NCBI GenBank assembly: GCA_000708835.1
Contig: DF237474.1
Coordinates: 2,828-65,862 of the forward strand
Direction: 5' to 3'
From: Klebsormidium nitens
Taxonomy: Eukaryota > Plantae > Klebsormidiophyceae
DNA: 63,035 nucleotides
Positions 3,973 through 46,197 of the stretch are shown here, piece by piece. The notes beneath the pieces are model-generated. The model did not search any database, had not been told where the DNA came from, and worked only from the letters and a program-made list of their open reading frames with translations. Both the position numbers and the translations under genes were made by a program. How positions within the stretch are numbered: the stretch's first letter is position 1; each line of letters opens with the position of its first letter.

Positions 3973-3974
3973 TC

Positions 3975-6277: not shown

Positions 6278-6301
6278 GCGTCAGTGGGGGCCCAGCACGG
6301 T

Positions 6302-13724: not shown

Positions 13725-13742
13725 TCCCCGGCATCGGCGCCA
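13725..13742 (-). promoter_or_regulatory. E2 primer-binding site complementary to the tRNA-Asp 3' end
   Basis: TGGCGCCGATGCCGGGGA directly follows B1. It matches 17/18 to the complement of the land-plant tRNA-Asp(GTC) 3' end as I recall it (TGGCGCCGTTGCCGGGGA, the Athila-type PBS). Confidence 0.85.
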
Positions 13743-15130: not shown

Positions 15131-15261
15131 AAGCCTCTAATCGAAGATTCCGAGGAACCTTTTGTCTGCGTGAACTCGGTGAGTTCGTTCGCCCGCATAA
15201 TCCGGGAAGAGTTCGGATGCGACCGTCCGCGGTTCGGCGCAGTCCATTCCGGTCGGGCCGG

Positions 15262-15420
15262 TGTCGTGCGATATAACGTCGGCGTTTGATTGACGTCGGT
15301 TACATGAAGTGATGAGACACATGGATCGGCTAAGCGTTAAAAAGTACATGATACGAGCAATTGGCGGTATATGTTGAGTAAACAAGGCGGCATGGATGGA
15401 ATTCATAGTCATTCATTATC
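15262..15420 (-). repeat. E3 segment A2 (159 bp, terminal)
   Basis: Copy of 16133-16291 with 2 substitutions seen. Confidence 0.95.
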
Positions 15421-16130
15421 GGGGTCGGGCCCCTTCCCTTGGTTAAGGATTGATTGAAAGGACACGATGGTTTCTTAAGCTGGCGCTCAGAAAAGTATGG
15501 CTGGTATATGGCACGTTATGAACAAGCTGTATTGGAGGTGGCTTGTGCTAACATTCAAGGTAATCCCCACAGCATCCACNNNNNNNNNNNNNNNNNNNNN
15601 NNNNNNNNNNNNNNNNNNNNNNNNNNNNNNNNNNNNNNNNNNNNNNNNAGTGTCCGGTGGCGATGGATAGTTAACTTGAATGAAAGTCAAGTTGGAAATG
15701 GCTGGGCCATTGACTTAAGTACCCGTGGATTCGCATAACGAGTTTGGACATCCACTTGCATGCTGCAGCTGGCTGCGCAGCATGCTATAGGGTACGCGAC
15801 GGCCGGTATCATAACCTGGTGACTCATGGTGACATAACCGGTTAGTGGCTGGTTACGTCCCCAGGGAACGTTCGAAAACGTACCCGGATTCAATCGCGGA
15901 ACCTTGGTTGCAATAATTGGATTGTGGATAACGGGTTGCACCAATGGATGTCCAGTATGATGTGACTGATCCATAGCCAATCCGTGACGAGCCTGCGAGG
16001 TTATGGTTAGATGTGCTAACTGCGGTCGGTTTAAGCTAACTAACTTATCTAAGTATGTTACGACATGCCACGTGTCCCATGCTGGTTCGCCAAGCGACGC
16101 GTTATGGCAGCGACGCGTTGTGGCATGACA
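15421..16130 (-). repeat. E3 segment B2 (contains N-gap 15580-15648)
   Basis: Copy of 45134-46155 on both sides of the gap; about 9 substitutions seen. Confidence 0.9.
15580..15648. other. Assembly gap (N run)
   Basis: 69 N. The matching stretch in B1 is much longer, so the gap size is underestimated. Confidence 0.95.
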
Positions 16131-16132
16131 GC

Positions 16133-16291
16133 TGTCGTGCGATATAACGTCGGCGTTTGATTGACGTCGGTTACATGAAGTGATGAGACACATGGATCGG
16201 CTAAGCGTTAAAAAATACATGATACGAGCAATTGGCGGTATATGTTGAGTAAACAAGGCGGCATGGATGGAATTCATAGTCATTCATCATC
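16133..16291 (-). repeat. E3 segment A1 (159 bp) directly after the PPT; joined to B2 by the spacer GC
   Basis: Minus strand reads PPT-GATGATGAATGAC...CGCACGACA-GC-TGTCATGCC. Confidence 0.95.
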
Positions 16292-16298
16292 CCCCCCT
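16291..16298 (-). promoter_or_regulatory. E3 polypurine tract
   Basis: AGGGGGGG on the minus strand, abutting A1. Confidence 0.85.
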
Positions 16299-16513
16299 AA
16301 GCCACCGAGTTGTCCCGACGAGGTTTAGGGCTTCAAGATTGAAGTGGTCAGGGATATGAAGAGTGAATTTGTGCCATATTCCTAAAATCCGTAATTTTGT
16401 TAATGTGCTAGGCTAAAATGTGAAGAGTGGTCCTTTGCCACCATACAAGTATGGCATCAGCTCTGACCCAAGATCGCGGAGCGGGGGCGCGGTTCGACTA
16501 ATCACATGTCTGC

Positions 16514-17155
16514 TCAAATATTGCCGTATCGTTGCATGAAGAAGTAAGTGCAGTCTGCGGTATGAGTACTTTGGCCTACATCGACTTGTCGCTCGATGAA
16601 TTCCAACATTGCGTCTCTGCGCGGCGTACTCATTCGTCTAGTGGTGACGGTTTCCTGTGGGAAATGTGCGGCGCACTCTTCTAATACTTCGTTTATTTCG
16701 GTGTGCGGCCATTTGGCAAGTAAGTACTGGCGCACGTTGATCGGGGTGCGATCAAGATCGTTTTCTCGTTCTAGTACAAGTAGTTCCCTATGCATTTGGT
16801 CAATGAGAGCATACCAGGTGCGATAGCTATGCACTAGTTGTTTAATTCGGTTGCGCCATTTTCCCATTCGCCAGGCGAGTTGGACCTTCTTAGTGGGCCA
16901 CCAATATTCATCCCACTCATGAATGGCTAACTTTTTGAGATGATCATAATATATATTCGGTGTGTAGGAAGGTGGTAAGTCTTCCAGGCCAGGAGTTGGG
17001 GGTGGGCCCCATCCTGAACTCTGAATTTGTTGTGACGGGTTGTCCCCGGGTTGTTGTGCTGAGCTGGATGCCATGCTTCCTGTATGAGTGAAAACATAGG
17101 TTAGACTTTGCCCCTCTTGCTTGGAGCTTATAAAGCGCATCGTGGGCAAAACCAA
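16514..17155 (-). CDS. E3 extra ORF (up to 213 aa) between the PHD finger and the PPT; function unknown
   Basis: Open frame with a complex Trp-rich core (HEWDEYWWPTKKVQLAWRMGKWRNRIKQL). No family recognised. Confidence 0.45.
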   Translation of the reverse strand: MVLPTMRFISSKQEGQSLTYVFTHTGSMASSSAQQPGDNPSQQIQSSGWGPPPTPGLEDLPPSYTPNIYYDHLKKLAIHEWDEYWWPTKKVQLAWRMGKWRNRIKQLVHSYRTWYALIDQMHRELLVLERENDLDRTPINVRQYLLAKWPHTEINEVLEECAAHFPQETVTTRRMSTPRRDAMLEFIERQVDVGQSTHTADCTYFFMQRYGNI

Positions 17156-18686
17156 TCTCCCTTTGGGAGTCTCAGGATAGGTGGGTCCAGGCAGTCCATG
17201 TGGTAGCCCTCGCTACAGTAGTCACAAATAAGCATTTTGGCAGGTCGGTTTGTCTTCTTGCAAATCTGACAAGCCCAGTCCTCATCGTATCCGGAAAGTG
17301 TGGTGTCCATGGTGAGGTCTGTGGCTGGATTGTGACACGGAGCACAATTCTCAACGTGATCTTTAACCGTTTTGCCCTCTCTGCCCTGCAATCCGAGCGC
17401 TCCATTAGGTAGGATCTCCTTAATTCTCAGGATGATGCGGCCTACATTGACATCGAGGGTGTCAACTTTTCTGCAACGCAGGTAGACCAAGTCTCCTACT
17501 TCAAACCTCTTAACTTTAGGGCTCCAATTGCCAGTACGTGTTTTGGCGTACCATAAAGTGTCCCGGTGTTGCGCTGCTTGCAGGTTGCTGAAGGCTATAG
17601 GGATAGCCTTTTTGAACTCCTCTGAACGTGCTGTAATGATTTTCTCCCACACGTCAGGGTTATCCAGGTCGACAGGTGTGTTGACCATTTCTCGGAGGGT
17701 TGCTACTACCACGGGATGTCGGCCAAACATTAGGAAGTAAGGTGAGTAGTCCCCTAATGACGTTTTCTTTGACATGCGGTACCCCATGGCAATCCAAGGG
17801 ATCCACTTATCCCAGGTATCAACTGCATGTGTTAATACGTACTTTCGTACGGCCCGCTTAGTGGTCTGAACTGCGCGTTCAGCGAGGCCCTCGGCTTGAG
17901 GGTGATCGCGTGAAGTTTCACGGTGATTAATGAGAAGTTCTTTACATAAGGTGTCAAATTCTCCTTGGAATTCTTGCCCTTGATCAGTAAGTACTTCCGC
18001 GGGTGCACCAAATGAGTGCAAACTTGAAGGAAAGCCTTTGCAGTTTCCTCAGAGGTATTGTTGGGGAGTGGAACTAGCTCCAACCACTTTGAGAAGTGTT
18101 TTATCATTACCATGATGTAATGATATCTGGATGCTGATGGGGGAAGCGGCCCTGCTAGGTCGCAACTCCATTGGTACCCTAAGCCCATGATTGGAAGGGG
18201 CTTGAGTACTGAGTCCTTGATGTTGAAACTGGTTTTTACGCGGTCACATACATGACAGCTAGCCACTAATTGCGCGATTTGTTCGTGCATTCTTGCCCAC
18301 CAGTGTGTGGGTTCTAACAAGGAGTAAGTTCTTTTTACTCCGAAGTGACCGAGTTGCTTGTGAATATGAGCCACTAATGCTGCCCTGGCGTCAGGCGCCG
18401 GCACTCGTTTTAAGATGCCATCGTTGGTCAGCTTCATGAGAGCATGGTTCTCAAACTTATAGCTCTGTGCTCGTCGCCGTATCCGGTCCCGTTCCTTGGG
18501 GCCTGCATGGCTGGGGTAGACACAATTATTCTGCAGATATTGTATCGTGTTGTGATCAGACCAGATATCGGGGATGGGGGCCAATTCCGGGTCGTCACCT
18601 AGGAGATCACCATCTTTATCTGTCCCTTGGAAGTGTGATTCAATTGCGTCTGTCCCCGTGACGCCGGTAACTGACTCAGTTACCAA
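17128..18686 (-). pseudogene. pol: E3 integrase with C-terminal PHD finger (one frameshift near 18020)
   Basis: HIHKQLGHFG...CHVCDRVK; WSCDLAGP; VLTDQGQEF; HPQAEGLAER; CQICKKTNRPAKMLICDYCSEGYHMDCLDPPILRLPKGDWFCPRC. Confidence 0.95.
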
Positions 18687-18737
18687 GTCTAATTCTGATT
18701 GGGATTGGTCTGGGGCAGAATTGACTTGCAGAGGAGG

Positions 18738-21013
18738 TTACGCGGAAGATTCGCCAGATGGAATCGCAATTTCCTGATTGACATAAAGATCTTGGGCGGT
18801 ATTCCGATCTTGTGCTTCGTGCGGTTGGTTGGCACGTGTTATGGTTGAGATGTCAGCACTTACCGTAGGGCGAAGTTGCCTTGAAGCGCATGCCCTTTGC
18901 TTCATGACGTGTCCTGTAGTCGGCAGGTCCCCCGTCGACAGTCTCAGCACGGGATAGGAGTCAACTTGGCTTGTTGTTCCCAGGTTCAGGTCTCTGCTCT
19001 TTGAGCTTGCATGCACATGTCGGGATGCATGATGGAAAGGATAGACTTCTCTCTGGATTGGTCGTCCCTGGCTGCTTTCAGTCGACTTAGCAGTCCATTG
19101 TTGACTTACAGTTCTAGCTAGCATTGTAGCTAAGACGCTGGGCGAGTCAACTGAGGGCGGCTTGCTTTCATTAGCAATCCCCTCCTTCTGAATAGTCAGC
19201 AGGCTATTCGAAGCTTCAGTGTCGTTCTGACTTCTAGTGGCATTGGATCGCTCTAAGGTGCGATTTTCACTCAATTCGTTCGGTTGGACATGGTCCATTC
19301 TGGCACCGGTAGAATCTACCTCTGACGGAAGCGGGTTGCGAGACAATCCATCTGCATCTAGGTTCTTAATTCCTGACCTGTGTTTGATGTAGATGTCATA
19401 CTCCTGAAGAATGTTAGCCCATCCGGCGTGCATTCCTCTTAGCTTCTCATTGGTCATTAACCATTCTAACGGTTCATGGTCTGTAATCAGAGTAAACTTG
19501 CGGCCGTACAAGTAATACCTGAAGTGGGAAACAGCCCAAACCGCAGCTAAGCACTCACCGTGGTAGCTGGAGTAATTGCGTTCCGTCTTGTTACAACTGC
19601 GACTGGCATAGGCAACGACATACTCGTTGCCCTCATCATCTCGTTGGGTGAGCACTGCGCCAAGCCCTTGTGCACTCCAGTCGGTGTGCAGCTCGAATTC
19701 GCGCTTGAAGTCGGGCCGGCGAAGGATGGGTGCTTCTGTTAAATGCGTCTTCAGCGTATCAAACGCCCGTTGGCATTCAGTCGTCCAGTCATATGATACT
19801 CCTTCCTGCAGCAAGTGGTTTAGTGGGTTTGCTATCTTGCTGTAGTTCTTGACGAACTTCCGATAATATCCGGCAGTTCCTAGGAAGGCTCTTAGTGCGC
19901 TTACATCTGGAGGAGGTGGGATTCTTAAGATTGCTTCCACCTTCTTTTCCTGCACTGCGGTTCCTTTAGGGACAATCAGGTGTCCCAGGTATCCTACGTC
20001 GGGTACGGCGGCGCGCATCTTTTTAGGATGGCATTTGACCCCTCTGTCTCTGAGTTGTTGAAAGACTTGTTTCAGGTGGGCCAGGTGTTCTTCGAAAGTT
20101 CTGCTGAACACTATTAAATCATCAATATAGCGGCGGCAAAAAGCTCTTTCGGCGCGGAGGGTTTAGTCCATGACCTTTTGAAAGAAGGCTAGTGCGTTCT
20201 TCAGTCCAAATGGCATGACCAACCATTCGTACAACCCGTCTGCTCCCCAGAATGCGGTCTTGCAGCGATCTTCTTCTGCAATCCGTATCTGATTGTAACC
20301 TTGACGAAAATCCAAGGTAGTGAACACTTTTGCATCGCCTATGACGTCGAATATTTCCTCTGGTGTTGGTATCTGATAGTGGTCAGGGACACTTACCCGG
20401 GTGAGGCCACGGTAGTCTCCGCAAGCTCTTCGTTGCGTCCAGTCTCCGTTTTCGTCCTTCTTTGGTGGCATAGTAATGGGGGAGGCCCATTGTGAGGTTG
20501 ACGGTCTAAAGAGGCCATTCTTAAGTCGTTCTGCCACTTGTTGCGCTAGGTCTTCCTTTTCTGACTGCGCTAACCGGTACTAGTGTTTGAATATTGGTGT
20601 CTCGTCACTGACTGGAATTTCGAATTCCACTCCAGGAATAGTAGTCATCTCTTGCATGTTGAAGGCGAAGATGTCTTTAAAACTGTCCAGGAGCTCTGTT
20701 AATTGTGCTTGTTGTATTTCAGTCAGTGAGTCTCCTATAGGCCAGCTCCATTCCTCTTCTGTTGTTTTTGCAGGGTTTACAACTAAACCTTTGTCTTCTG
20801 CAGGTCCTACTGTTGGACTTGCCTGCTTGGCAGCTTCCTTTGGCTGCTGGCCGGGACTCTTTGAATTTCCGGCTGATCTGCCGTCTCTCGGCTGATCCTT
20901 AGAACCACCAACGTGATTTATGTGCTCGCCGGGCGAGCGCTCGCTGCCCTTTCCTGCGCGTCTCAGTTGAAGTTTGGCTTCTTGTCTGCTGAGGGGATGG
21001 TCAGGGCTGTCTT
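18738..21013 (-). pseudogene. pol: E3 reverse transcriptase and RNase H
   Basis: RRACGDYRGL; FTTLDFRQGYNQI; MPFGLKNA; RRYIDDLIVF near 20110-20140; FELHTDWSAQGLGAVL; KNLDADGLSRNP. Confidence 0.95.
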
Positions 21014-21672
21014 TGCCATGCCGTGGGGCGTCCGTGCCGTACCACGTAGCGCGCGCGCCCGCGGCTGGCGGCATAGAGGGTGGCAACCGGCGGGAGTCAT
21101 CCACGCGGCTGCCTCAAGGGTTTCGAGGCTCCGGTGGCCTGTCAAGTGTGCACCGGGATGACCACATGGATCCGGTTCAGTGGCTCCGGTGTGACCACAC
21201 AAATCCGGTCAAGTGACCAATAGCTGTACGAGGTCACACGAGTGTAGCAGATGCTAGAGTTGCTAGTTGTTGACCTCCGGCCGAGTGTAGATCTGGAGCT
21301 GTAGGCTGATCTCCGGCCAAGAGGTAGTAGTAGTATATCTACTTGCTTCTAGAGTAGTGTGACTCACTTCTCAAGTTGCAAGTTCTCCGTGAGTATCCTT
21401 GTGAGGACAATGGCGCCTAAGCATGAGAGAAGGACCTGTTGACAGCGAGCAGCGATCTCCGGTGCGGAGCACGACTCCGGTGATGTGAGTGTTGAGCTGT
21501 GTGCAATGGAGGCTTTCTTGTCATGCGAGTCATTGGGAGGCCGGAGCAATGTATGAGGAGTCAAGGCATAGCATGGGGTATGTATGTCAATGTATGGTTG
21601 TATGGTCTGTATATCGGTGACTATCCCTTTGAGCAAGCACCCAAGTGTAAAGCCGAGAAGTGGCATTTACTT
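21014..21672 (+). repeat. E4 segment B1 (5' partial LTR)
   Basis: Copy of 34753-35408 with about 10 differences. TATA-like gtatatct near 21343. Confidence 0.95.
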
Positions 21673-21687
21673 GCAACTTGAGAAGTG
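21669..21687 (+). promoter_or_regulatory. E4 putative self-priming PBS
   Basis: ACTTGCAACTTGAGAAGTG is the exact reverse complement of 21365-21383 inside B1. No TGG-type tRNA match abuts the repeat. Confidence 0.75.
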
Positions 21688-22201
21688 CTTGCTTGGTGGT
21701 CACTAGAGGCCTAGTGGTCTTGTCAAAACTGAGGGGGGGTAGCTAAGATTGCACTTTGCCCTGCAGTGACAGGATTGTTTCCAGTTGCGTGTGTTGCGTT
21801 TCGGGAGCGGTGATCAGCCAAGGGGCTGGACCGGTGGCATAAGCAGGGACCTGTGGTTTCTCTAGCACCGGTTAGCAACTTAGAAAGGGGGCCTGAGCTT
21901 GGGTCCTCTTTGTTGCTGTTCCCGAGCTTGGTATAGCTTGGAAGAGACCTCTTTGAGCTTGGGGTATCCTGGAAATAGGTACCGGAGCTTCGTAAGTGCT
22001 TGTCTTAGGGCCCGCGAAGGGTGCCGGAGGACTGTTAGTGCTTGTCTTAGGGCCCAGGAAGGGTACCGGAGGACAGTAGGTCTTGTCTTAGGGCCCGCTA
22101 AGGGTGCCGGAGGACAGGTCTGAGCACCGGAGTGTGCTTGGGTCAAAGGGGCTAGCTATAAGATTGTAGCTTGTAACTCCCAGTCACGCTGGTCTCTGCG
22201 T

Positions 22202-24093
22202 ATGCAGCCCCAGCAAGACGGTTCCCCGGAGCCTCCTTATTGGACAAGGAGTCAGGGACCTGCCCCGGCAGCACCCCCTGAGGAGGACCGTTCGTCTGCA
22301 GTCAGGGCTTTGGGAGAGTCTTCTACCCTGAGTAGCAGCGCTACCGGTGAGCTTGAATCCTCGACCTCCATCCCTCTTAGTGGACGGCCCAATGAGCCTG
22401 TCATTTGGGCTTCAAGTGTTTTTGGTTGGGAGGACACCTTTGAAATGGAGGACACCGGGGTCAGCTCTTCCGGGCAAGGGGGCATGAATTTCGATGGACG
22501 TTTGGGAGGTCTGAGCGTCCCGGACCTGAAGCTGGGCTACCAGAACAAGCTGCAGCTGCTCCGCTCCCGGCGTAGTGNNNNNNNNNNNNNNNNNNNNNNN
22601 NNNNNNNNNNNNNNNNNNNNNNNNNNNNNNNNNNNNNNNNNNNNNNNNNNNNNNNNNNNNNNNNNNNNNNNNNNNNNNNNNNNNNNNNNNNNNNNNNNNN
22701 NNNNNNNNNNNNNNNNNNNNNNNNNNNNNNNNNNNNNNNNNNNNNNNNNNNNNNNNNNNNNNNNNNNNNNNNNNNNNNNNNNNNNNNNNNNNNNNNNNNN
22801 NNNNNNNNNNNNNNNNNNNNNNNNNNNNNNNNNNNNNNNNNNNNNNNNNNNNNNNNNNNNNNNNNNNNNNNNNNNNNNNNNNNNNNNNNNNNNNNNNCCC
22901 TGGCTGCCTACCTCGACTTCCAGTACGTCTCCAGCCGCAGCACCGCCGCCACCTTCCACTTCCTGCGGGAACTGTGCCGCAAGAACGGGAAGGAGACAAC
23001 GGGGCGGGAGGTGACGGAGAAGGCCCTCAAGTCCTTACGCCCGGAGATCCGGAAGGCATTGGAGGGCGACGTGCTGAAGTGGGCGGTCGACAAGTGCACC
23101 CTCACCAACCTGGAGGACGACTTGCGCAAGGTGGAGGACGCCCTCCACACCAGGGACCTGGAGCGCGACCCCTAGACGCTGGTGAAGTCACTTGCGGGGA
23201 AGGTCAAGGACCTGTCCCTGTCAAGGCCTCATCCCCGGTCTGCTGAAGACAGCCACCCCCGGCGAGATCGCAGCCCCCGGCGGCACGACGACCGGAGGGC
23301 CAAGGGAAAGGGCAAGGGCAAGCAGGCCTTTGCCGCGACCGCAGCTCCGACCAAGGGGACCGGCTTCCAAGGGGCCTGCTACAACTGCGGGGAGCACGGG
23401 CACACGAGGGCCGAGTGCACCAAGGAGCCCAAGGGCGGAGGCTCCATGAGGAAACCGGGGGCCTACTGCGGCCACTGCAAGCGGCGGGACTCCCACACCG
23501 ACAACGAGTGCTGGGAGAAGCATCCCGACAAGCGGCCGGAGAAGTGGAAGCAACCACGCGCCGGAGGACCGGCCCGGCCTGCCTACGCAGCCGCGGAAGT
23601 GGGGGGGGAGGACGACCCCATGAGCCCCGACTTCGACCCGTTGACCACCTGGGGCGCCCACCTGCTGGGCCAGGCGACAGGAGTGGACGTGATGGCTGTG
23701 GGGACCCCGGAGGACTACCCGGAGGTGCGCCCCAGCACCATGGCGCAGCGGGACACGGAACCCGCAGCGCGCGCCCGCACGGAAGCGGAGCGCATGCGCG
23801 CAAAGGCGAGCAAAGATCGCCTGCGGCGCGGGGGGCCTCCCCCGGCTTTCAGGCCACAGGGGGAGCGGCCCCCACCGGACCAGGGAGCAGGAGAGGCAGC
23901 GCCGCCGGCGACAGCAGAGGCGGCTGAGGGACCGGGGCCCGCACAGACGGGCCCGGTGCAGCGCCTACTACCTAGCTTCGGGGAGTGCCCCGTCACTGAC
24001 CCCCGGTACCAGGGGGCAGAGGACCTGGAGCGCGCAGGGGTGCAGCCCCACCTCCTGGCGGAGCCCACGGTGGGCCCTCAGCGAGAGGTGTAG
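22202..24093 (+). pseudogene. gag: E4 gag (N-gap 22578-22897)
   Basis: CYNCGEHGHTRAEC knuckle and a second Cys/His motif YCGHCKRRDSHTDNECWEKHP. Confidence 0.8.
22578..22897. other. Assembly gap (N run)
   Basis: N run within E4 gag. Confidence 0.95.
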
Positions 24094-27000
24094 GTGCACC
24101 GCCGACACCCCTTCGAGATCGTCGCCGCCCCGGCGCACTACGCCTGGGTCGGGGCCGTCTCCATACTGCCCCCGGATGGCACCACCGGGCAGCCCCTGCG
24201 CTGCAAGGGGGGGGGAGGCTCATCCTCCGGCGACGAAGCCGAGGAGGAGGGGAGCGAGGAGGAGGGAGAGGACGCTGAGGGGGCTGCTGGAGAAGCAACT
24301 AAAGAGGATTACGGCGTCGAGGACATGGGGGACGCAGCAGACCTCACCCCCGCTGAGCGCGCCATGCGGACTATCCCGGCGAGGTACCGCTACTTTCCCC
24401 CGGCCCAACTCCCCACCATGGCCGAGGTCTACCTCCAGAAGCACATCGCGCTAATGGAGGAGAACTTCCGTGCCGACCCCAAGGGCAACCCCGACCGTGA
24501 GGATCACCGCAACCCGGGGTGGCACAAAACCCCCCGGTGGTCCAACTTCAAGCCGGAGGAGCTGGAGGCCTACATCCTGTGGCACGGCCGGTGGCTGGTG
24601 ACGTACGAGCAGCACGCGCATAGGCGGCTGCACGTGGGGGAGACAGTGGCGGCGCAGGACGCGTATGTCCTGTCTGCCTTGGGAGCGGCCCAGCGAGGAC
24701 TGCGGGCCTACTTCCGGGACTGCAACGAGTCCCAGCTCACCAACCCCGACTTGCGGATGATCGTCAACATCCACGAGTGGTTGATGGAGCCCCCGGTGGA
24801 CCGCCCGGAGGATGACTACGCGGTTAACCTAGGGCCCCCACCGGAGGAGGAGTTAACCCGGCCGGCTAAGGCGACTCCCCACGGAACGCGGCTCCGGGTG
24901 CCCCTGTCCCTGCTGCAAGCTTACTTCACCCAGCGCTATGGCACCAACTGGGTGGAAGGCTTCTTGCAGAACCGAGTGGTCAACTACCCGGAGGGCATGC
25001 CGAACCGCCCCACTCCCTGCCACGACTACAAGCTGCCTAGCACCGGACCACTGTCGGAGGGACCGGTGACCCCAGAGAGCGTCCCCATCAAGGCCAAGGT
25101 CAAACCAGCGACCAAGGCCAGGCCCAACACGCCCCCAGGGTTGCGCATCTTAGTGCGCGACGCCTGGAAGGACACCGAACCGGATGGGTCAAACCAACCA
25201 CACGGTCGGATTTGGCGCGAACCCACACCCCCGCCGACCGCAGAGGACCGGGGTGGAACCACACCGGCAGAGGGAGGAGCCGGGAAGGAGCGCGGAAAGA
25301 AGCGCCCGGCGGGAGCGGCAGCGGCCGGGGGAGGACAACCCCGGGGCAGCAAAGTCCCCAAGAAAGTTCCGGAGAGCACGGGGCCGGAGGCATCCGCAGC
25401 AGCATCGAGTGCCGCTGCTAAGGGGAAGGCCAGGGAGCCAACCCCGGAGGAGCCTACCGAGGAGGAGGAAACCGAGGAGGAGATGAACGAGAGGCTCGGG
25501 GAAGAGATAGCAGAACGGGTGAGGTACATGTACTCGATCCACACGCGGAACCCGGAGTTCTACGAGGGGGTCACCACAGCCGAGCTGGTGGCAATGTACA
25601 TCAACCTCAGTGCGGAGGAGGTGAGGACGGAAGAGGGGCGCCGCATGCACCAGACGTTGGTGTATCACCAGATGCAGGCGGAAATCGACCTGGTCGAGGG
25701 GAACAGCGAACAGCATCCCATTGAGGAGATGTTGCAGCTGGACAACATAACGGCTGCCGCCCCCCTGACCCAGGAAACCCTCCAGCAGTACCTCGCCCTT
25801 GCCCCGGAGCAGCGCCTTAACCTCCGGGGGTACAACCTCTACAGCAAGTTCCTCCGCCTCCGGGCCCAGGAATTGCGGGAGGGATTTGCAGACGAGATAG
25901 CCCAGCACCGGGAGGAGGAGCAACGGGAGGAGGAGCAACGGGATCAGCGACCTAGCACGCCCCCGGCAACCACCCAGACTTTCCCAGTGGCTAAAAGAAC
26001 TGCCATCCCAATCCCACCAATAACCGCAGGGCCCTCCATCCCGGTGGGCCAGAAGCGGCGCGCGGCAACCCCTCCGGAGATGGAGGAGAGACCTAGGAAG
26101 GTCGCCGCGGAAGACACTAGAGACGCAGAAGGCGTGCTCACGGGGTCAAGATCCGAAGCTGCGAAAGTTCCAGCAGCAGACACCGTCTCGGTGCCCGCAG
26201 CTGGAGGGGGGGACCAGCAGGAGAAGAAAGAAGAAAAATCGGCGGAGACCGGAGCTGAGGGGCCAGAAGAGCCCGGGGCAGAAGAGGAGACGGGAGAAGA
26301 AGGTCAGGGGTCAGGGCCAAGCACAGGCCAAGTGTCAGGCGCAGGCGGGGCAAAACCGGGGGGGAAAACCAAAACCCAGCCCGGGGAGGCAGGCCGGCAG
26401 CACGGAGTACCTACAACCTCCCTGTCGGAACCCACCTCGGAGCTGGAGCAGGCGCTGGCGGCGGTCACAATGGTCACCATGTCCACATCCTCGCACTCCA
26501 GCAAATTGCAGGTTGCCATGGGTACCGGGTCGTTTATCGCGCTCCCCACCACCAGCATCGAAACGTTCGACACTTCCGACGTTCGTGCCCGTGCCCGTGA
26601 TTGAAGCGCACTTGGCGTTGGAGGAAGCGGAGCCCATTGCAGCCGCCCCCGAGACGGAGTCCCTGGATGGTGCATCCCTGGAGCCAACACCCCCTACCCG
26701 TTCAACAACCTCTACGCCCCCACCTCCGCTGGGACCACCCCCGCCACCGAGACCGCCACCCCCACCGCCAAGACAGCTAACCCCGGTGCCGAGCGACACA
26801 CCATCGACATGGGAGCATGTGGCGGCAGACCTGGGGGAGACGGTGCGGGCGCTGTACCCAAATGGGCCTGAGGAGAACCAGCTCATGCAGGCCGTGGCGG
26901 ACGAGGCGGGCTACCCACCGCTCCATGCGGTAGGAGGGCAGGAACTGACCCGGATCTTGGTGGAAGACCTCCGCCGGACCTACCCCAACAACCCCGAGGT

Positions 27001-27997
27001 GGCTGCGGTGATGGTAGATGACCCCGGAGAGGTGACCCGCCGCACCGCCCAGCGGCTACACGACTACCGCAAGGAGCGAGGCCTTGCCGCAGCCGCGCAC
27101 ACAGAGGCGCAGGAGCTGGAAGCGGCAGAGGAGGCCAAGAAGGCGGGCAAGGTAAAAGCCAAGGTGGGGGAGGAAGTGCCTCCCACCCCGGAGAAGCCAC
27201 CGGGCCCCGGGGCCGCAGACGGAGTTCCTGCAGCACAAGGGGCGCAACCGGAGGGAGGCGTAGCGGAGGAGTTACCCGCAGCGCCTGAGAAGGATCAGGG
27301 CGAGGGAGCTGCCGGAGGGGCGGGACGAGTGGTACCGGAGGCCGTGATAGCGGCCCCTGTCTCTTCCCGGCCACCTGTACCCGCAGCCCCCGCCAGTGCG
27401 ACCCCGGTCACACTCGCCTTGGCCATGGCCGGACGTGCGGGCTTGGCAGCACCGGTGGCCAAACGACCCCCGGTGCCAACAGACGTGGTGGTACGGGTGG
27501 GAGATGTGTCTATTTCATGGGACGAATCGATTGGGCAGGCCGTCAACCGGGCCAGCAATGCCATCGTGCGAAACATCCTCCCGCACTACCTCCGGGGCCC
27601 CAATCTGACGGCCTTTGTGGCAGCGCACCTGTACGAGGAGCTGCGCCGCAGACCCCCGGGGGTACCTACCCCACCTCCAGTCCCGCCAGCTAAAGGCGAG
27701 GAGCAGGAACGACAGAGCCCGGGTCCCACGGACGAGCACCCACAGCGGGAGCAGCCCCGGAGGGACCACCCTGAGGGCGACGGAGGCGGAACCGGAGGAC
27801 AACCGGCACCGGCCCCCGCGGCAGCACCTGGGGCAGGGGGACATCAGGCCCAGGGCCCCAAGGCGGGGACCCAGGGCGGGCAGAACGCGGGGGGAGCGGC
27901 TCCGGGCGGAGCCGGCGAGCGTGCAGCGAGGGAGCCAGCCATTTCCCGGGCGCCAGCGCGGCCAACACGCCTCCGGCGATGCATTACGCCGGAGTAG
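24094..27997 (+). CDS. E4 long low-complexity gag-pol linker ORFs (836 aa and 494 aa), function unknown
   Basis: Two long overlapping frames, rich in Glu/Pro/Ala, with some globular-looking blocks (e.g. EELEAYILWHGRWLVTYEQH). Confidence 0.55.
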
Positions 27998-28051
27998 TCA
28001 GCTCCCCGAGCGCTAGTATGGCCAATTCAACCCCCGGCGTCCCCTACCTAC

Positions 28052-28561
28052 ATGGCCCTAGGCGAAGGAGAGATCAGCTCAACCCTGGAGCTGTTGGAGC
28101 CGGCGGCGAGATCCTTCCTCGTGCGGCAGTTGGCAAACCTGCCGGCGCATCGGGGGGACCGGAAGAGAGAGCGGGTGCGGGCGCCCATAGTGAAGGTCCG
28201 AGAGAGGGCCTTGTGGGTGAACGGCAAGCCACTGCAGGGGAGCGCGATCCTGGATTCAGGGGCAATGCCCCTGCTGATCGGGCGCCCGGGGCTCATCCAA
28301 CTGGGACTGAGCGCAGAAGACGTCACCCCCAACGCAGTGCGGTTGGGCCTAGCAGACGGCAAGTCCACCCGGCTGTTTGGCGTCACCCAACAACCCATCA
28401 AGTTCACGTTTAACCCGGGGAAAGCGACAGAGACGGAGATCTCGGTCCGGGCGGTAGTGACGCAGGCGCCCTACGACTTTCTCGTGGGCAACGTCGTGCT
28501 GTGGGTCATTGGGGGAGTCATTGACAGTTGGCGGGAGCAGTTCCGGTATCAGGTGAACTGA
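28052..28561 (+). pseudogene. pol: E4 aspartic protease
   Basis: SAILDSGAMPLLIG active site; PYDFLVGNVVL C-terminal motif. Confidence 0.88.
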
Positions 28562-29333
28562 AAGTCCGGGCTGCCTGACGCAGACGGGCCGGAGGGGTAC
28601 ATTCCCCTAACCTTCGAGCGGGAAAAGGGGGCGGCCCCATTGCCAGACGCATTCTACTCAACCCTCCACCGCAGGGGGGGAGAGGAAGTAGACAGTGCGG
28701 TGTAAGTTGAGTCGGATGATGAAATGCTCTCGTTAATTGACGATGGGTCTGACGACAATTCCGACTTGGCACCCACTGTGCTACCCTTCCCCATCCTCCC
28801 GGCGGCAGTAGAGAGGGAGCGCCTCCGACGAGAAGGAGAGGCGAACCACGGAGGGGTCGAGATCCGGGGACCGAGACTGGCGGAGAGACTTAATCGCTAC
28901 AGAGAGCTCCTTGGACTGGCGCCCGGGGAGTACGCGCGACGCTGGGCTGAGGAAGGCCCGGCCATAGAGGAGCCAGAGGTCCCTGAGCCCGGCCTAAAGG
29001 GGGTTAACCTGAAGGGCATTAACCGGGTCAACCCAATCCCTGCCGGCGAACCGGAGAGGGACTTCAAGCCCGAAGAGGCGGCCCGGAGGCTGGACACCGA
29101 GACTACGGCGGCCCACAACGCCGCCACCGGGACCAGGCACGTAGACTACCCGTGGGATCCCGTGTTAAGATCCTAGGAGGGCTACCCCGCGCGCAACACG
29201 CAGCAGCAAGTTGTAAACCACCGTGGGAGGCCGGAGCTGCCACCCGGGTGGACGCGGCGGGGGGACAACGACAACCTCTACTACCGGGAGCTGACTGACT
29301 ACAACGACTCCCGGGAACAAGACTATCCCCCAG

Positions 29334-30604
29334 ATGCGGGACCAGCGGCGGCAGGAGCCGCCACGGGTACTGGTGTACGAAGACGGGGTCCAACCCGTAC
29401 CTGCACCGGACCCGGAGGCCTGTGAGCAGGTGGTGCCACCACCGGAGGACGAAAACTGGGAGGAGTTGCCCCAGGCGTTCATGGTGGACCACCACGCCTC
29501 GCCGGAGGAGCAGTCAGCTAACGCGCAGGCTACTCACTACCGGGAGAATGAGATGATTTGGGCCACTGACGACAACCACACCCGCATGTTCGGGGACGAG
29601 AAGTGGCTGCGAGTGCTGCTGCTCTTTGGGGGCATTGCGGCGGAGTTGGAGGCGCTGCTGAAGGCCGGGGTCAACATCAAGCAGGTCGTGTACGTGGACA
29701 ACGACCCGGTTAGCCGGAGGGTCTTCGGCCACCGTTTGCGGGCCCTCCATCACGCCTACCCGGAACAGCTACCGGAGTTGGCGTACCACGCACCAACACA
29801 TCGCTCTCCTGGGACATCAGCGAGATCGGCGAGCTAGAGCTGGTGCGCCACATCGGGCGCGATGGGCAACACCCAATCGACCTGGTGACGGTGTCATCAC
29901 CGTGCCAGGGCTTCTCGCGGGCCAATCGACAGGCCCGGGGGCTAGAGGACCCACGCTCCAGTCTCTACCTGGAGGCGGTGCGCGTGCTGGCGACCATCCA
30001 ACGCCTGCAGCGGCCCTGGGGGCACGAGCCGGGCTACATATTCGAGATGGTGGACGCGAGCGATCACGCCAGCCCGCCAGCCCGGTGGGGCTTTCAACAA
30101 ATGGAGCTCATCAGCGGAGGCTACGCGGGGAGCGGCATCCGGCTCGACGCAGCCAAGTTGGGGTCGGCAGCCCACCGGACCCGAGTGTTCTGGACCAACT
30201 TGGCGCGCGCAACCGACATCCAGGAGCGCTACACCCAGTTCGACCGCGACCAAGTCTGGGACCGACTGGACGCACAGGACGCGCTGGACAACTTCCGGGC
30301 AGTGCAATTGGCGGCCCAGGACGACCCCGCAGTACCGGGGTACTACCGCGTCAACATGAAAGGGGAGCCTTTGCAGGGTTTTCCTACTTTGGTGGCGACC
30401 CCAAGCTCCTACGCCTTCCGCTTTCAAGCCAACCAACCGGGGCCGGGGATGGTGTACGACCGCAACGTGCGCAAGTGGCAGGAGCCCAACGCCGACGAAC
30501 GGGAGCGGATCATGGGGATGCTGCCAGGGTCCACAAGGGGCTACAATGTCCCGGAGGCAGAACGCCGGAGGCTAATCGGGAGCGCCACCGACGTCCGCGC
30601 CTAA
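29334..30604 (+). pseudogene. E4 C5 cytosine DNA methyltransferase domain in Pol (frameshift near 29790)
   Basis: Motif I VLLLFGGIA; VYVDND; motif IV DLVTVSSPCQGFS (29900-29908); VI IFEMV; VIII HRTRVFW; IX ERERIMG; X RRLIGSA. Confidence 0.88.
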
Positions 30605-31199
30605 ACCTGGCTGTGCAAGGAGTTTCGCCGCTGGCGGGTCATCAACAAGGACGAATGAAGGCGCGCGGGGGCGACAGACGCGCCCCCGGAACAAGGGTGT
30701 TACGACTCACCCTCAACAAAAGCCGAAGGAACCCAGCCAGCTGGCGGCCTGCAAAAATCACAGCCCGCAGCTGGGGGGAGGTAAGTACAGGGGCCGGAGA
30801 GCCTAAACAAAATCCACCTGGGACCGGAGCGTCCCAGGGCCAGGCCGGAGAGCCTGAACAAGCTGGGAAGTCCGGCACAGCCTTAGTGGAGCAAGAGGGG
30901 GAGAAGGGCAACTATCCCCAGGGACTAACCGGAGGAGAACCCGGGAAGGTCAACCAAGGAGGTGGGGCCCAAAAGGCCTTAGGGCCAGGGCAGTCCGAAA
31001 GGGCCTTGCCCCCGGAGGGGGGCAAACCACCAACACCCGATCAGGGTGGACAAGAGCTACGCCGGGACCCTGCCCCGGGAATCAACAGGAGAGAGGGCAC
31101 AGGGGAGATCAGCTTGAAAGGGCTGCATTCCCTTGAAGCCGGAGGTCAGGAACTGGGACCGGAGCTGCAGGCAACAGCTGTGGGGACAGCACCAGAGGA

Positions 31200-33800
31200 G
31201 AAAGGTGCGAGCCAATTCGGAGCAAAGGGGACTGAGAAGCCCTTTGAGTGGGGAGACGAGCAGATCTGGCCGGGACTACCACCGGAGCAGAGGGCCGAGG
31301 TCACGGGGCTGCTGGAGGAGTTCCGGGACATCTTCGCGTGGTCCATCTACGACCTGAGCGACACCGCCATCGAATGGGTGGAGTTCGAGGTGGACTTCAC
31401 CGACGAGAAGCCAATCTGGTCACCCAAGCGGCGCTACTCCCAGTACGAGACGGACCTGTTGAAGGCGTACGTGGAGGAGAGGCTGGCCGCCAAGCTCATT
31501 GCGCCTTTAAAGCTGCCCCCGGGGGTCAAGGAGCCCTTCGCTGCCGCCACCGTCATGCCGCGCAAGAAAGACGCGGAGAGGAACTGGACGGAGAGGCGGA
31601 TCTGCGGCGACTACCGGCCCCACAACGACAAGACTGTCCCTGACAAGTACCCGATGCCTATAGCGGACGAGCTATTCGACGATCTGGGGGAGAGCGACTG
31701 CTTCTCCACGCTGGACCTCAGGATGGGGTACCACCAGATCCGGATCCGGGAGGGAGACGAGTGGAAGCTGGCGTTGGGCCACGACGACCTCTACATGCCG
31801 CTGCGCACCCCCTTCGGGCCCAAGAACGCGCCAGCGCTGTTTCAGAGGCTGATGGACCGGGTGCTGCGGGAGCTGCGGGCCTTCGCGCGGGCGTTCATCG
31901 ACGACACCATCGTCCACGCCAAGGGCTTCCGGGCCCACTTGGACGCCCTGCGCGGAGTCTTCACCGAGCTCCGGCGCCACAACATCAAGGTGCACCCGAA
32001 GAAGATCCGGATCCTTTTCCCGGAGATCCCTTTCTTGGGGCACATGGTTAACCCCGTGGGGCTGAAGCCCCAAGCCGTCAAAGTGGCGGCCATCCAACGC
32101 ATCCCCTACCCTACAGGCCAAACCGCCATCAAGCAGTTCCGGGGCATCGTCAACTACTACCGCAAGTTCCTTGCGGGGTGTAGCGCGGTGGCCCGGCCGC
32201 TAAACGACCTACTCAAGAAGGACGTGGAGTTCCGGAGGAGCTGGGAGCTGAATGCAAGGAGGCGGTGGACCGGCTGAAGGCGATGCTGTGCGAGGCACCG
32301 CTGTTGGTGCGCCCGGACCCCAGGAAGGAGTTCGAGCTGCACACAGATTGGAGCGCGGCAGGATGCGGGGCAATTCTACAACAACGAGACGACGCCGGGG
32401 AGGAACGGGTGGTGGCCTACGCCAGCCGGAGCAACAACAAGGCCGAGAGCAACTACTCCAGCTACGCTGGGGAGTGCTTGGCCGCGGTGTGGGGAGTGCG
32501 CTACTTCCGGGTGTACCTGTACGGGGCGCGCTTCATCCTCTACACCGACCACCGCCCCCTCGAGTGGCTGGTGACCAACCCCAACCTCACGGGCATGCAC
32601 GCCCGGTGGGCGCTGATGCTTCAGGAGTTTGACTTCGAGGTGCGGTACCGCAAGGGGTTGATCAACATGAACGCAGACGGGCTGAGCCGAAACCCCCAGC
32701 CGGAGACAGAGGATCCCACCGGAGCGCGGATGCATGAGGACGCGGCCGGAGGAGGGGACCCAGGGCCGGGGGGAAGGCCAGCAGTAACCTACCTGGCCTG
32801 GCAGGCCTGGGCAGCCGACACTCCGGTGCCCCCAGGGGAGTTGGAGTACCTCACTATGGAGGAGGCCGGAGGCGAGCCGTGGGAACCAGAGGACGAGCTC
32901 GAGCTCCCCGGAGAGCTGCCCATGCCGGGCCCAATGGACTACGGCACTGTTGACGCAGATGTACAGGTCCCGGAGACTCCGGGGCTGGGGGGAGAAAGAG
33001 CCAAAGCCCTCACCGACATCTGGGAAGACATCAACACCCTGAACCACCTGTGGACCGGGGTCCTCGACCCCAACTGGAGCAAGGGCGAGGTGGAGAGAGT
33101 GCGCCGGAGAGCGCAGTCCTACCGGTTTCGGGACGGGGTGGTGATACACCATCTTAATAGCGATGGGGAGGAGGAGCCCCGGACCTGCGACGGGGTGCTG
33201 TTGCGCCTCCTGGCAGGGGGGGAGGAGAAGATCGTGCCAGCACCGCAACAGCGGGACAACCTGGTTCGAGAAATTCACGACTTCACCGGGCACTGGGGCG
33301 AGAAACGCACGGTGCACCTCCTCAAACGAACCTACTGGTGGGCCGGGATGTACAAGACGGCCCAAGACGGCGTGGCAAGTTGCCAACAGTGCGACCGGAC
33401 CAAGGCGAGCTTCTCGGTCAAGATGTCGGGGATGAAGTCCCTGCCCATCATGGGGCTGGGGTACCGGTGGAGCCTGGACTTCGCCGGGCCTCTGCTGACG
33501 ACCCGGAGCCGGAAGCGGTACTGCCTGGTCATCATCGAGCACTTCAACAAGTGGTGCCAGCTAGTGGCGCTGCCCAGCAAGCACTTGGGGAAGGTGGCGG
33601 AGGCGTTCCTGGCCATTATGACCCGGTTCGGAGCCTGCGCGGAAGTCCTAACGGACAACGGGAGTGAGTTCATGGGCGAGTTTGACGCCCTCTGTCAACG
33701 ACTCCTCCTCGACCACCGCACCACCTCCCGGTACCACCCCCAGTCCAACGGCCTGACGGAGCGCTTGGTGCGCACCATCAAGGAAGGCATCACCCGCTAG
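31200..33800 (+). pseudogene. pol: E4 RT, RNase H and integrase core
   Basis: RRICGDYRPHN; FSTLDLRMGYHQI; AFIDD; FELHTDWSAAG; HDFTGHWG...CQQCDRTK; WSLDFAGP; VLTDNGSEF; HPQSNGLTER. Confidence 0.95.
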
Positions 33801-33850
33801 GGACGGAAGCCGACCGCCGGACGTGGGACGAGTGGCTGCCGTACCTGGCA

Positions 33851-34528
33851 ATGGGGTACCGGATGAGCCCAAAGACGGCTCTGGGGGGATACTCCCCCTA
33901 CTTCCTTTTGCACGGCCGTCACCCCATGCTTACGGGGGAGGCGGTCAAGCAGTTGGTGGGAACTCCGGTCGATTTCGACACACCGGAGCAGTGGGTGGCG
34001 GCATGCCACCAGCGAGCGGAGGTGCTGCAGCGGGAGATGCCCCTGGCCTTGGGGAACCTGCTCGCTGCGCAGCACCGGGACCAACGGCGGTACGACCACG
34101 TGCGCAAGACGGGGTACCGGCCGAAGGTGCGGAAATTTGAAGTGGGGGACCTGGCCTACCTCCGGCGCCAACCGGCGGACAAGACGGACGTGTCCGTGAC
34201 GCGCGAGGCGTACCGGGTACACCAGGTCGGCTCCAACGGGCGCTTGGTGTTGCAAGGGGCGGACGGGACGCTGTTCAAGGAGCATATCGAGAACTGCGCC
34301 CCCTGCCACAACCCCAACATCGACACCACCATCGACCCGACGCTCACGACAGTGACGGCAGATCACGCCTGCCAAATATGCAAGAGCCCCGGCCGGCAAG
34401 CAACGATGTTGCTTTGCGACTACTGCCTGGAGGGTTACCACATGGGCTGCCTAGAACCGGCGGTCAAGGAGGTGCCCAAGGGAGTTTGGCTGTGCTCAAG
34501 CTGCACCCAGAGCTTGCAGCAAGGGTAA
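33851..34528 (+). pseudogene. pol: E4 integrase C-terminus with PHD finger
   Basis: KFEVGDLAYL; ENCAPCHNP; CQICKSPGRQATMLLCDYCLEGYHMGCLEPAVKEVPKGVWLCSSC (C4HC3). Confidence 0.92.
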
Positions 34529-34558
34529 CTCGCCACAGCCGCGGGGGCCGCGGCAGGC

Positions 34559-34570
34559 GAGTGGGGGGGA
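34559..34570 (+). promoter_or_regulatory. E4 polypurine tract
   Basis: GAGTGGGGGGGA directly before A1. Confidence 0.85.
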
Positions 34571-34750
34571 AGTAAACGGATAGCCACGGGTCTAGCCGGG
34601 CTATGCCTAGAAATTTCTGCATGGCTAGATGCGGATGGGAAACACCCAAATGAGAGCCGGAGAGTAGCGTGACTAACAATTCCGGGCTCGGAGTTCATTG
34701 CGTTCAGCCGGACCCGATGAGGACCGGCAATAGCCGCGTAGCGCACGGCA
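34571..34750 (+). repeat. E4 segment A1 (180 bp), followed by the spacer GC
   Basis: AGTAAACGG...CGCACGGCA-GC-TGCCATGCC. Copy of 35409-35588 with 4 transitions. Confidence 0.95.
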
Positions 34751-34752
34751 GC

Positions 34753-35408
34753 TGCCATGCCGTGGGACGTCCGTGCCGTACCACGTAGCGCGCGCGCCCG
34801 CGGCCGGCGGCATAGAGGGTGGCAACCGGCGGGAGTCATCCACGCGGCCGCCTCAAGGGTTTCGAGGCTCCGGTGGCCTGTCAAGTGTGCACCGGGATGA
34901 CCACATGGATCCGGTTCAGTGGCTCCGGTGTGACCACACAAATCCGGTCAAGTGACCAATAGCTGTACGAGGTCACACGAGTGTAGCAGATGCTAGGGTT
35001 GCTAGTTGTTGACCTCCGGCCGAGTGTAGATCTGGAGCTGTAGGCTGATCTCCGGCCAAGAGGTAGTAGTAGTATATCTACTTGCTTCTAGAGTAGTGTG
35101 ACTCACTTCTCAAGTTGCAAGTTCTCTGTATCCTTGTGAGGACAATGGCGCCTAAGCATGAGAGAAGGACCTGTTGACAGCGAGCAGCGATCTCCGGCGT
35201 GGAGCACGACTTCGGTGATGTGAGTGTTGAGCTGTGTGCAATGGAGGCTTTCTTGTCATGCGAGTCATTGGGAGGCCGGAGCAATGTATGAGGAGTCAAG
35301 GCATAGCATGGGGTATGTATGGTCAATGTATGGTTGTATGGTCTGTATATCGGTGACTATCCCTTTGAGCAAGCACCCAAGTGTAAAGCCGAGAAGTGGC
35401 ATTTACTT
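34753..35408 (+). repeat. E4 segment B2
   Basis: Copy of 21014-21672. Confidence 0.95.
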
Positions 35409-35588
35409 AGTAAACGGATAGCCACGGGTCTAGCCGGGCTATGCCTAGAAGTTTCTGCATGGCTAGATGCGGATGGGAAACACCCAAGTGAGAGCCGGAG
35501 AGTAGCGTGACTAACAATTCCGGGCTCGGAGTTCATTGCGTTCAGCCGGACCTGATGAGGACCGGCAATAGCCGTGTAGCGCACGGCA
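35409..35588 (+). repeat. E4 segment A2 (180 bp, terminal)
   Basis: Abuts B2 with no filler (CATTTACTT|AGTAAACG). Ends GGCA, then the TSD. Confidence 0.95.
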
Positions 35589-35906
35589 TCTTTACTTAAA
35601 TTAGCTTGGTCGAAACTAATTGAGGTGCATGTCTGCTTATCTGAATTGGAATTTGTGTTCAGGTAAGAGTTGGCGAAGTGGATCTGGTCTCCCCTCCCCC
35701 CTTGCATAGGGAACATACCAACCTGGCCGTTCGCTATGCACTCTGCTACGGAAGTCGGGGTGTGATGTTATTGAGCTGTGATTGATTATTGCTAAATTAT
35801 GTAATTCGTGGGGCGAAATGAGGTGAGTTGTAGGCATATTGCTCAGAATTGCTAGGCGATTCACACTAGTGTCTCTGATTTTAGCTAGTTGTGACTCAGC
35901 GCGCCG

Positions 35907-45131: not shown

Positions 45132-45133
45132 CT

Positions 45134-46155: not shown

Positions 46156-46197
46156 CCGGTACCGGTCCGGCCGGTATGCGGTCCGGAAACGGGCTTA

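Follow-up and report, generated by a model that had tools for sequence, protein, structure and literature searches.

Permuted terminal repeats with putative abutted integrase half-sites in Ty3/Gypsy elements of Klebsormidium nitens and their relatives from prasinophytes to a liverwort

In the textbook account, long terminal repeat (LTR) retrotransposons and retroviruses integrate a linear complementary DNA (cDNA) by its ends, and circles in which these ends have been joined are considered dead ends. An integration route through the circle junction was once proposed for retroviruses and then abandoned. In the circle junctions of bacterial insertion sequences (IS) of the IS3/IS30 type, two TG..CA-type ends lie abutted around a spacer of 2-3 bp and are inserted together by a DDE enzyme. 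Internal cleavage of palindromic LTR-LTR junctions has been reported for the integrases of foamy virus and of human immunodeficiency virus type 1 (HIV-1) (PMC1180852, PMC1905944). Here, we describe three Ty3/Gypsy elements, E2, E3 and E4, in a 63,035-nucleotide stretch of Klebsormidium nitens DNA (assembly GCA_000708835.1, contig DF237474.1, positions 2,828 to 65,862), which as a whole is referred to below as the window. The three elements share one layout, B1-internal-A1-NN-B2-A2, in which the 3' and 5' termini are abutted within the repeat. We consider it fairly likely that this arrangement is a DDE-integrase attachment site stored as abutted half-sites in a Gypsy repeat, and that the elements insert via a joined-ends intermediate cut at the internal palindrome.

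Two described elements are relevant to this layout. Gypsy-7a_cRei of Chlamydomonas reinhardtii is presented as a Gypsy element of large size that includes a PHD finger; according to a figure legend, which also marks "LTR subparts", the last 8 bp of its right LTR are absent from the left one, and the passages on its activity report 86 new insertions in laboratory strains, of ~15 kb each, which added ~1.3 Mb (PMC9940879). In K. nitens itself, the KnitGypsy-Dnmt3 elements are introduced in the passages devoted to them as LTR Gypsy elements that carry a Dnmt3-like methyltransferase in pol (PMC5890265).

Repeat layout, termini and recurrence

The inserted copies of E2, E3 and E4 open with the TG of B1 and close with the CA of A2. 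Their features are as follows.

21014-35588, plus strand: E4, whole element, with a GC spacer
21010-21013, plus strand: E4 target-site duplication TCTT, left, identical to 35589-35592
21014-21672, plus strand: E4 B1, the single 5' repeat, with start TGCCATGCC, 98% identical to B2
21685-21693, plus strand: E4 candidate self-priming site (tentative), complementary to a 9-mer 41 nt before the B end
34561-34570, plus strand: E4 polypurine tract (G-run), directly 5' of A1
34571-34750, plus strand: E4 A1, ending with the 3'-terminus sequence GCACGGCA, 97% identical to A2
34742-34761, plus strand: E4 abutted-ends junction, consisting of 3' half-site, GC spacer (34751-34752) and 5' half-site
34753-35408, plus strand: E4 B2, from self-comparison
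35409-35588, plus strand: E4 A2, fused directly to the B2 end, its last base being the 3' terminus (..GGCA)
35589-35592, plus strand: E4 target-site duplication TCTT, right
15262-46155, minus strand: E3, whole element, with E4 nested within it and a GC spacer
46156-46159, minus strand: E3 target-site duplication CCGG, 5' side
45124-46155, minus strand: E3 B1, the single 5' repeat, with start TGTCATGCC at 46155
16292-16298, minus strand: E3 polypurine tract AGGGGGG, directly 5' of A1
16133-16291, minus strand: E3 A1, ending GCACGACA
16122-16141, minus strand: E3 abutted-ends junction, with GC spacer at 16131-16132
15421-16130, minus strand: E3 B2, which holds an assembly gap
15262-15420, minus strand: E3 A2, base 15262 being the 3' terminus
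15258-15261, minus strand: E3 target-site duplication CCGG, 3' side
3167-14534, minus strand: E2, whole element, with a GA spacer
13743-14534, minus strand: E2 B1, with start TGTTAC at 14534
13742-13730, minus strand: E2 candidate transfer RNA (tRNA)-type primer site, beginning TGG, directly after B1
3967-3983, minus strand: E2 abutted-ends junction, consisting of a 9-bp A1 (3983-3975), GA spacer (3974-3973) and B2 start
3176-3972, minus strand: E2 B2
3167-3175, minus strand: E2 A2, a 9-mer identical to A1, fused to the B2 end, with 3167 as the 3' terminus

Self-comparison of the window places a 20-mer of E3 and one of E4 across the A1/B2 boundary of each element. Each 20-mer consists of a 3' terminus, a 2-bp spacer and a 5' terminus, abutted within the repeat, and its half-sites are identical to the real termini of the inserted copies: E4 begins with TGCCATGCC at 21014 and ends with GCACGGCA at 35588, between flanks TCTT/TCTT, and E3 begins with TGTCATGCC and ends with GCACGACA, between flanks CCGG/CCGG.

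A preliminary description of the window had pointed out the E4 20-mer (34742-34761, plus strand) and the E3 20-mer (16141-16122, minus strand) as matching at 18 of 20 positions within otherwise unrelated LTRs, and both are present exactly as quoted there. The two differences are mirror-symmetric (GGCA..TGCC in E4, GACA..TGTC in E3). A degenerate 18-mer scan of the window, allowing up to three mismatches, returned the E3 and E4 sites only, with 0.25 sites expected. Pairwise alignment of the LTRs bore out that the likeness is restricted to the junction: beyond it, local alignment of the A and B segments, with or without the 12 nt adjoining the junction, gave similarity no better than that of shuffled sequence. 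The repeat DNA alone is unrelated, however, since the reverse transcriptase (RT) proteins of the two elements are 43% identical and fall in one clade. Between E4 and its closer relative L002 (loci from outside the window carry L numbers), repeat similarity is limited to the ~50 nt that end A and the ~28 nt that open B. The E2 analogue announced in the same description was located at 3967-3983 (minus strand).

The preliminary description also took the two compensatory differences as a sign of a selected integrase site in the middle of the LTR. This covariation argument proved weak, because the G..C variant is confined to the E4/L002 lineage and represents a single double change in the whole clade. 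The site itself fared better: the half-sites are the element termini, the elements encode DDE integrases, and the motif coincides with the element ends in six further complete copies that come from other genomes (L026, L064, L078, L081, L090 and L091), so that the 20-mer is supported as a putative integrase recognition or cleavage site. In the decayed copies L040, L055 and L062, the junction core reads GATA-GC-TATC where others have GACA-GC-TGTC; such C-to-T and G-to-A changes, placed symmetrically at the CAG/CTG core, could represent deamination at a symmetrically methylated CHG site, which mimics compensatory change.

The polypurine tract, a G-run or G-rich segment, adjoins the start of A1 in every case and not the TG of B2, which lies 11 to ~190 bp further downstream. 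The boundary between primer site and B1 is the sole canonical LTR boundary in these elements, and the canonical Ty3/Gypsy arrangement of two identical LTRs, whose outer ends are the termini and of which the 3' one adjoins the polypurine tract, is not found in them. Since the polypurine tract adjoins A1 and the primer site adjoins B1, the repeat expected from reverse transcription is A-NN-B. This repeat ends without TG/CA and without an inverted repeat, and its ends are therefore not integrase substrates.

For the candidate self-priming site of E4, none of 300 shuffles reached the observed 9-nt self-complement, which resembles the known self-priming of Tf1. Locus L026 likewise contains a significant self-priming-type complement to sequence in B, at 2018-2026. 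The type of primer site thus varies within one architecture, with a self-priming type in E4 and L026 and a tRNA-type candidate in E2. A search for transfer RNA genes that might support the E2 site gave no match, either in the window or in eight of the loci.

Pfam identified RVT_1, RT_RNaseH, Integrase_H2C2, rve and zf-CCHC domains in E3 and E4, and RVT_1 and H2C2 in E2. The pol domain order, RT followed by RNase H and DDE integrase, together with the gag zinc knuckle, is that of Ty3/Gypsy elements. In E3 and E4 the integrase is followed by a PHD finger; no chromodomain was found at the integrase C-terminus, where the PHD finger stands instead. No Phage_integrase (tyrosine recombinase) match was obtained in any open reading frame (ORF) scanned. 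The RT of E2 is just 30% identical to that of E4, indicating that two distant lineages have the same layout.

For comparison, 80 loci were gathered by protein similarity alone, so that the motif played no part in their choice. Homologues of the E4 RNase H-integrase ORF occur in Klebsormidium, Closterium, Volvox, Cymbomonas and one liverwort, many of them with a PHD finger. The order polypurine tract/A1 ..CA-GC-TG.. B2/A2 ..CA/flank was found in L004 and L005 (both K. nitens), L002 (a JGI metagenome) and L089 (an ENA assembly), and the same 3' block is present in Volvox africanus (L092) and Cymbomonas tetramitiformis (L093). Two divergent families dominate the protein-selected loci; both have this architecture, and their nearest named proteins are those of Calypogeia fissa (58-74% amino acid identity). 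Target-site duplications of 4 bp flank L026, L064, L078 and L081 (AAGG/AAGG, ATGT/ATGT, AACA/AATA and GCAT/ACAT, respectively), as well as L090 of C. fissa (AGTG/AGTG) and L091 of Closterium sp. NIES-65 (AAAT/AAAT); they are perfect in E3, E4, L026, L064, L090 and L091 and match at three of four positions in L078 and L081. The core ..GACA-GC-TGT.A.. is common to elements from a prasinophyte through to the liverwort. The spacer is 2 bp long in all, and all 10 young copies from the PHD clade have GC there. Loci L001 and L086-L088 were uninformative, being without repeats or affected by gaps or contig ends, and the 5' repeats of L002, L004 and L005 lie outside the retrieved flanks. Tandem arrays with periods of 51 bp and 57-82 bp occur near the Closterium and Cymbomonas elements (L091, 2449-3011 and 5636-6234; L093, 19784-22532); they bear no relation to the layout.

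On the 3' side, A-NN-B-A was observed in ~28 unique loci and A alone in ~16; each of the 17 5' sides consists of a single B. None of these 17 ends is of the mirror form, B-A-NN-B-internal-A; about six would be expected if the A-only ends were mirror copies. With the 5' side always a single B and no mirror form, there are two integrated forms, a long form and a unit form (B-internal-A). Young copies of the Klebsormidium type are mostly long (seven long; L001 and L087 are A-only by appearance, which is unconfirmed). The long form appears to be the primary product, given that new insertions of Gypsy-7a_cRei measure ~15 kb each, and unit forms plausibly arise by later deletion between A1 and A2.

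The B2/A2 joint was judged in 12 complete copies, each against its own B1 end and A1 start. It is exact in E2, E3, E4, L090 and L064 and altered, in a copy-specific manner, in the other seven. In L026, L078 and L067, 2-4 nt of A are missing; the joint of L081 is short of 3 nt of B and 5 nt of A and contains one added nucleotide; L083 shows one further G from the polypurine tract side, and L091 a 2-nt filler. In L016, a long form, A2 is cut down to its last ~30 nt (12522-12552) with the 3' half-site retained, as if this cDNA end had been resected by ~150 nt prior to joining. The family 2 alignment has 16 gap columns at the joint, compared with 0-4 at the NN junction and at controls. Divergence between A1 and A2 is about the same as that between B1 and B2, which indicates that A2 is newly made at each insertion. 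On these sequences, the B2/A2 joint resembles cDNA termini joined without a template, once per insertion, and the NN junction a templated, selected site.

A proposed route of insertion and its alternatives

The anatomy of the copies, their duplications, the polypurine tract and primer boundaries, the generality of the layout, the 2-bp spacer, the imprecise joint and the lack of a mirror form are direct observations, which we read as follows. Ordinary reverse transcription would produce (A-NN-B)-internal-(A-NN-B), and the termini of this cDNA, the end of B and the start of A, would be joined end to end as in a two-LTR (2-LTR) circle, either by a host ligation pathway or by template switching. 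Integrase would then nick both strands 3' of the CA at the palindrome of the 5'-side repeat. Nicking at the 2-bp spacer would yield recessed CA-OH ends with 2-nt 5' overhangs, i.e., the usual strand-transfer substrate, and insertion with a 4-bp stagger and loss of the spacer would give B-internal-A-NN-B-A, a circular permutation of the expected cDNA. Only A1-NN-B2 would be transcribed into the next cycle, as a heritable template of both termini; since the internal junction alone would be copied onward, it would remain conserved while the rest of the repeat drifts. The bias towards the 5' side may reflect that the 5'-side repeat is double-stranded or completed first and lies nearest to a cDNA end, or that A is in every case the shorter of the two segments. 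What we infer here is the order of joining and cutting, the joining enzyme and the reason for the constant use of the 5'-side junction. We would give even chances to the wider claim that a joined-ends cDNA intermediate, with the palindrome in the repeat cut by integrase, is obligatory in a green-algal and bryophyte Gypsy lineage and in at least one distant second lineage, that of E2. Pure reverse-transcription schemes were also tried, based on read-through RNA, self-priming, long RNA primers or extra strand transfers; none yields a templated extension of the right end.

Half-sites that equal the element termini, the placement of E3 and E4 in one clade, and standard TG..CA ends with a 4-bp duplication would all suit ordinary LTR termini that share ~8 bp through related integrases, with the internal A1 an incidental local duplication and linear cDNA integrated in the standard way. 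The census of forms contradicts this account: A1-NN-B2-A2 recurs in ~40 elements from at least eight families and at least six host genomes, and the 5' repeat never occurs with an A. Moreover, the polypurine tract adjoins A1 and not the TG of B2, and a linear cDNA running from polypurine tract to primer site would lack the CA on the right. We judge such an origin very improbable. Slightly less so, but still improbable, is that the palindrome is kept mainly for another role and coincides with the termini only secondarily; it might, for instance, bind a transcription factor at a CAGCTG box or be methylated symmetrically. The CAGCTG core is indeed a perfect palindrome and a CHG-type site, and in decayed copies C-to-T and G-to-A changes occur in it symmetrically; conservation, however, tracks the termini exactly, and the spacer length is invariant. 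At this structural position E2 differs in sequence (GGTAACA-GA-TGTTACC), which means that position and symmetry are conserved rather than a particular binding motif.

The X1-internal-Y1-X2-Y2 topology equals that of the A1-B1-A2-B2 split direct repeats of PAT, Ngaro and Toc (PMC4157794, PMC5890265). Were the present elements of this DIRS kind, a tyrosine recombinase would cross over at the palindrome and a closed circle would recombine with its target. In the scanned ORFs, Pfam found integrase domains (H2C2 and rve) and none of a tyrosine recombinase, the domain order RT-RNase H-integrase is as in Ty3/Gypsy, and TG..CA ends with 4-bp duplications are not products of conservative site-specific recombination. 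The rve integrases, the termini and the duplications contradict DIRS-like membership, and we regard this explanation as extremely improbable. A weightier alternative retains the same site and dispenses with a prior covalent circle: the palindrome of the 5'-side repeat would be cut on linear cDNA and the abutted ends inserted, with the remaining termini joined later by host end-joining, or the joint made by a template jump of RT. This would account for the use of the junction nearest to the cDNA end only (A always shorter than B, the mirror form in 0 of 17), and the fillers, small losses and 150-nt resection do resemble products of end-joining or template switching. Against it, the A arm left after cleavage in E2 and Gypsy-7a_cRei would be just 8-9 bp, hard to hold as a duplex until joining, and each insertion would involve a chromosome break. 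We see this alternative as unlikely, though with an appreciable chance of being correct.

Several points weigh against insertion through a joined-ends intermediate as we propose it. The joined-ends molecule is inferred from its chromosomal scar only. Random cutting of a 2-LTR circle predicts the mirror form equally often, and as none is seen, an extra asymmetry is required. The ~16 unit loci could be the primary product of cutting linear cDNA at both internal sites, or could result from later deletion between A1 and A2. The variability of the family 2 joint may in part be slippage in a short CAATT repeat, the self-priming signal is significant in two families only, and the target-site duplication of E2 is imperfect (three of four positions, with CTT shared).

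Coding content, gaps and composition

The coding regions and assembly gaps of E3 and E4 are listed below.

23182-24093, plus strand: E4 gag ORF, with a CCHC zinc knuckle
28052-34528, plus strand: E4 pol, with a weak protease match, RT, RNase H, H2C2-rve integrase and PHD finger
22578-22897: assembly gap in the E4 5' region, between B1 and gag, far from both junctions
35593-45123, minus strand: E3 internal region 5' of the E4 insertion, with gag, methyltransferase segment and an assembly gap
40877-42589, minus strand: E3 gag CCHC ORF
35925-36679, minus strand: E3 Dnmt3-like cytosine-5 methyltransferase segment in pol, with FPCQG.. and ENV motifs in translation
17128-20825, minus strand: E3 pol 3' of the E4 insertion, with RT, RNase H, integrase and PHD finger
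15580-15648: assembly gap in E3 B2, of 69 N, with a true size of ~391 nt by comparison with B1
38544-38662: assembly gap in the E3 interior

Compared with uninterrupted relatives, E4 has two frame changes and one stop between RT and PHD finger. The methyltransferase segment of E3 is broken by one frame change and three stops, its RT-RNase H portion has two stops and its integrase-PHD portion one frame change, and the gene is split by a single nested insertion, E4. Both copies are thus inactive in their present state. The E3 methyltransferase segment is 38-39% identical at the amino acid level to an L089 ORF annotated PF00145; taken alone, its pieces gave no Pfam match, being too short. With the target-site duplication and L089 as guides, E4 was found to be inserted between the methyltransferase and the RT of E3. 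An attempt to follow E3 across E4 by means of the E4 polyprotein gave no match in the right flank, which is the methyltransferase region and not RT.

To the right of the gap at 22578-22897, from 22909, E4 is collinear with the gag region of the gap-free L002 from its position 1013, and the gag ORF of L002 starts ~350 nt further upstream than the collinear point; the E4 sequence to the left of the gap has no match to L002. By this comparison the gap probably hides the start of gag. The layout is independent of continuity or reading frame across it.

Between gag and the protease/RT region of E4, ~6 kb (24094-29900, plus strand) are occupied by long ORFs (836 aa, 494 aa and smaller) for which Pfam gave no match, and L002 has a comparably long unannotated stretch. 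The E4 interior (24000-34000) is 64-68% G+C with a strong excess of A over T, and the remaining window, including E3 and E2, is ~50% G+C; such a contrast is unusual for a resident element. In E2, a 637-aa ORF downstream of the integrase (4364-6277, minus strand) has a weak F-box match only. The flank beyond E3 (46160-63035) gave no convincing protein-domain match, only a weak C1orf109-like one at 57329-57889.

Comparison with known systems

Dozens of elements, in hosts ranging from prasinophytes to a liverwort, have their reverse-transcription ends joined and their insertion ends inside the repeat. This permuted architecture and its implication are more notable than the 20-mer itself. If the route proposed above is right, a DDE integrase uses abutted ends in a eukaryotic retroelement, and the 20-bp island, deeply conserved in otherwise unrelated repeats, has a simple reason. 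Standard LTR-finding tools would mis-bound such elements, because no duplication stands beside the B pair. Split direct repeats would also not be diagnostic of tyrosine-recombinase elements, which bears on the classification of non-autonomous algal elements. With an active Chlamydomonas relative for which long-read assemblies are published, the question can be approached from existing sequence data.

The 8-bp asymmetry given for Gypsy-7a_cRei in the figure legend matches the 9-bp A of E2. The passages that describe that element mention the asymmetry in passing, and contain no upstream copy of those bases, spacer, palindrome or mechanism (PMC9940879). KnitGypsy-Dnmt3 elements carry a methyltransferase segment in pol as do E3 and L089, and on the strength of its sequence E3 can be assigned to the KnitGypsy-Dnmt3 type, which suggests a host like Klebsormidium; permuted repeats are not mentioned in the passages on these elements (PMC5890265). 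In the literature searched, which covers these papers in part, the permuted layout is not described save for the 8-bp remark on Gypsy-7a_cRei (PMC9940879), and earlier accounts are possible. Chromoviruses (e.g., the Chlamyvir clade) have an integrase chromodomain, whereas the elements described here have a PHD finger instead.

PAT, Ngaro and Toc, of the DIRS order, have the same topology, with one repeat part at the 5' side and three at the 3' side, which implies a permuted, circle-like intermediate (PMC4157794). They employ a tyrosine recombinase, in contrast to the DDE integrase, TG..CA ends, 4-bp duplications and Ty3/Gypsy membership of the elements described here, and the likeness is convergent. 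DIRS elements are not known to produce target-site duplications on insertion, whereas duplications are present in our elements.

The retroviral 2-LTR circle likewise presents abutted integrase half-sites as a palindrome, and its U5/U3 joint corresponds to the B2/A2 joint. The retroviral palindrome comes into being when the cDNA ends are joined, its CA and TG stand 4 bp apart, and it is generally deemed a dead end. In the present elements, by contrast, the palindrome is encoded in each repeat with a 2-bp spacer, the joint of the cDNA ends is separate and non-palindromic, and chromosomal copies carry the scar of the joined form. If the obligatory route holds, this would be a natural case of circle-junction integration, convergent both with the split repeats of tyrosine-recombinase elements and with the circle junctions of bacterial IS elements. 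The IS junction is formed anew by the transposase of a DNA element, whereas here a retroelement keeps the junction in its repeat and copies it by way of RNA.

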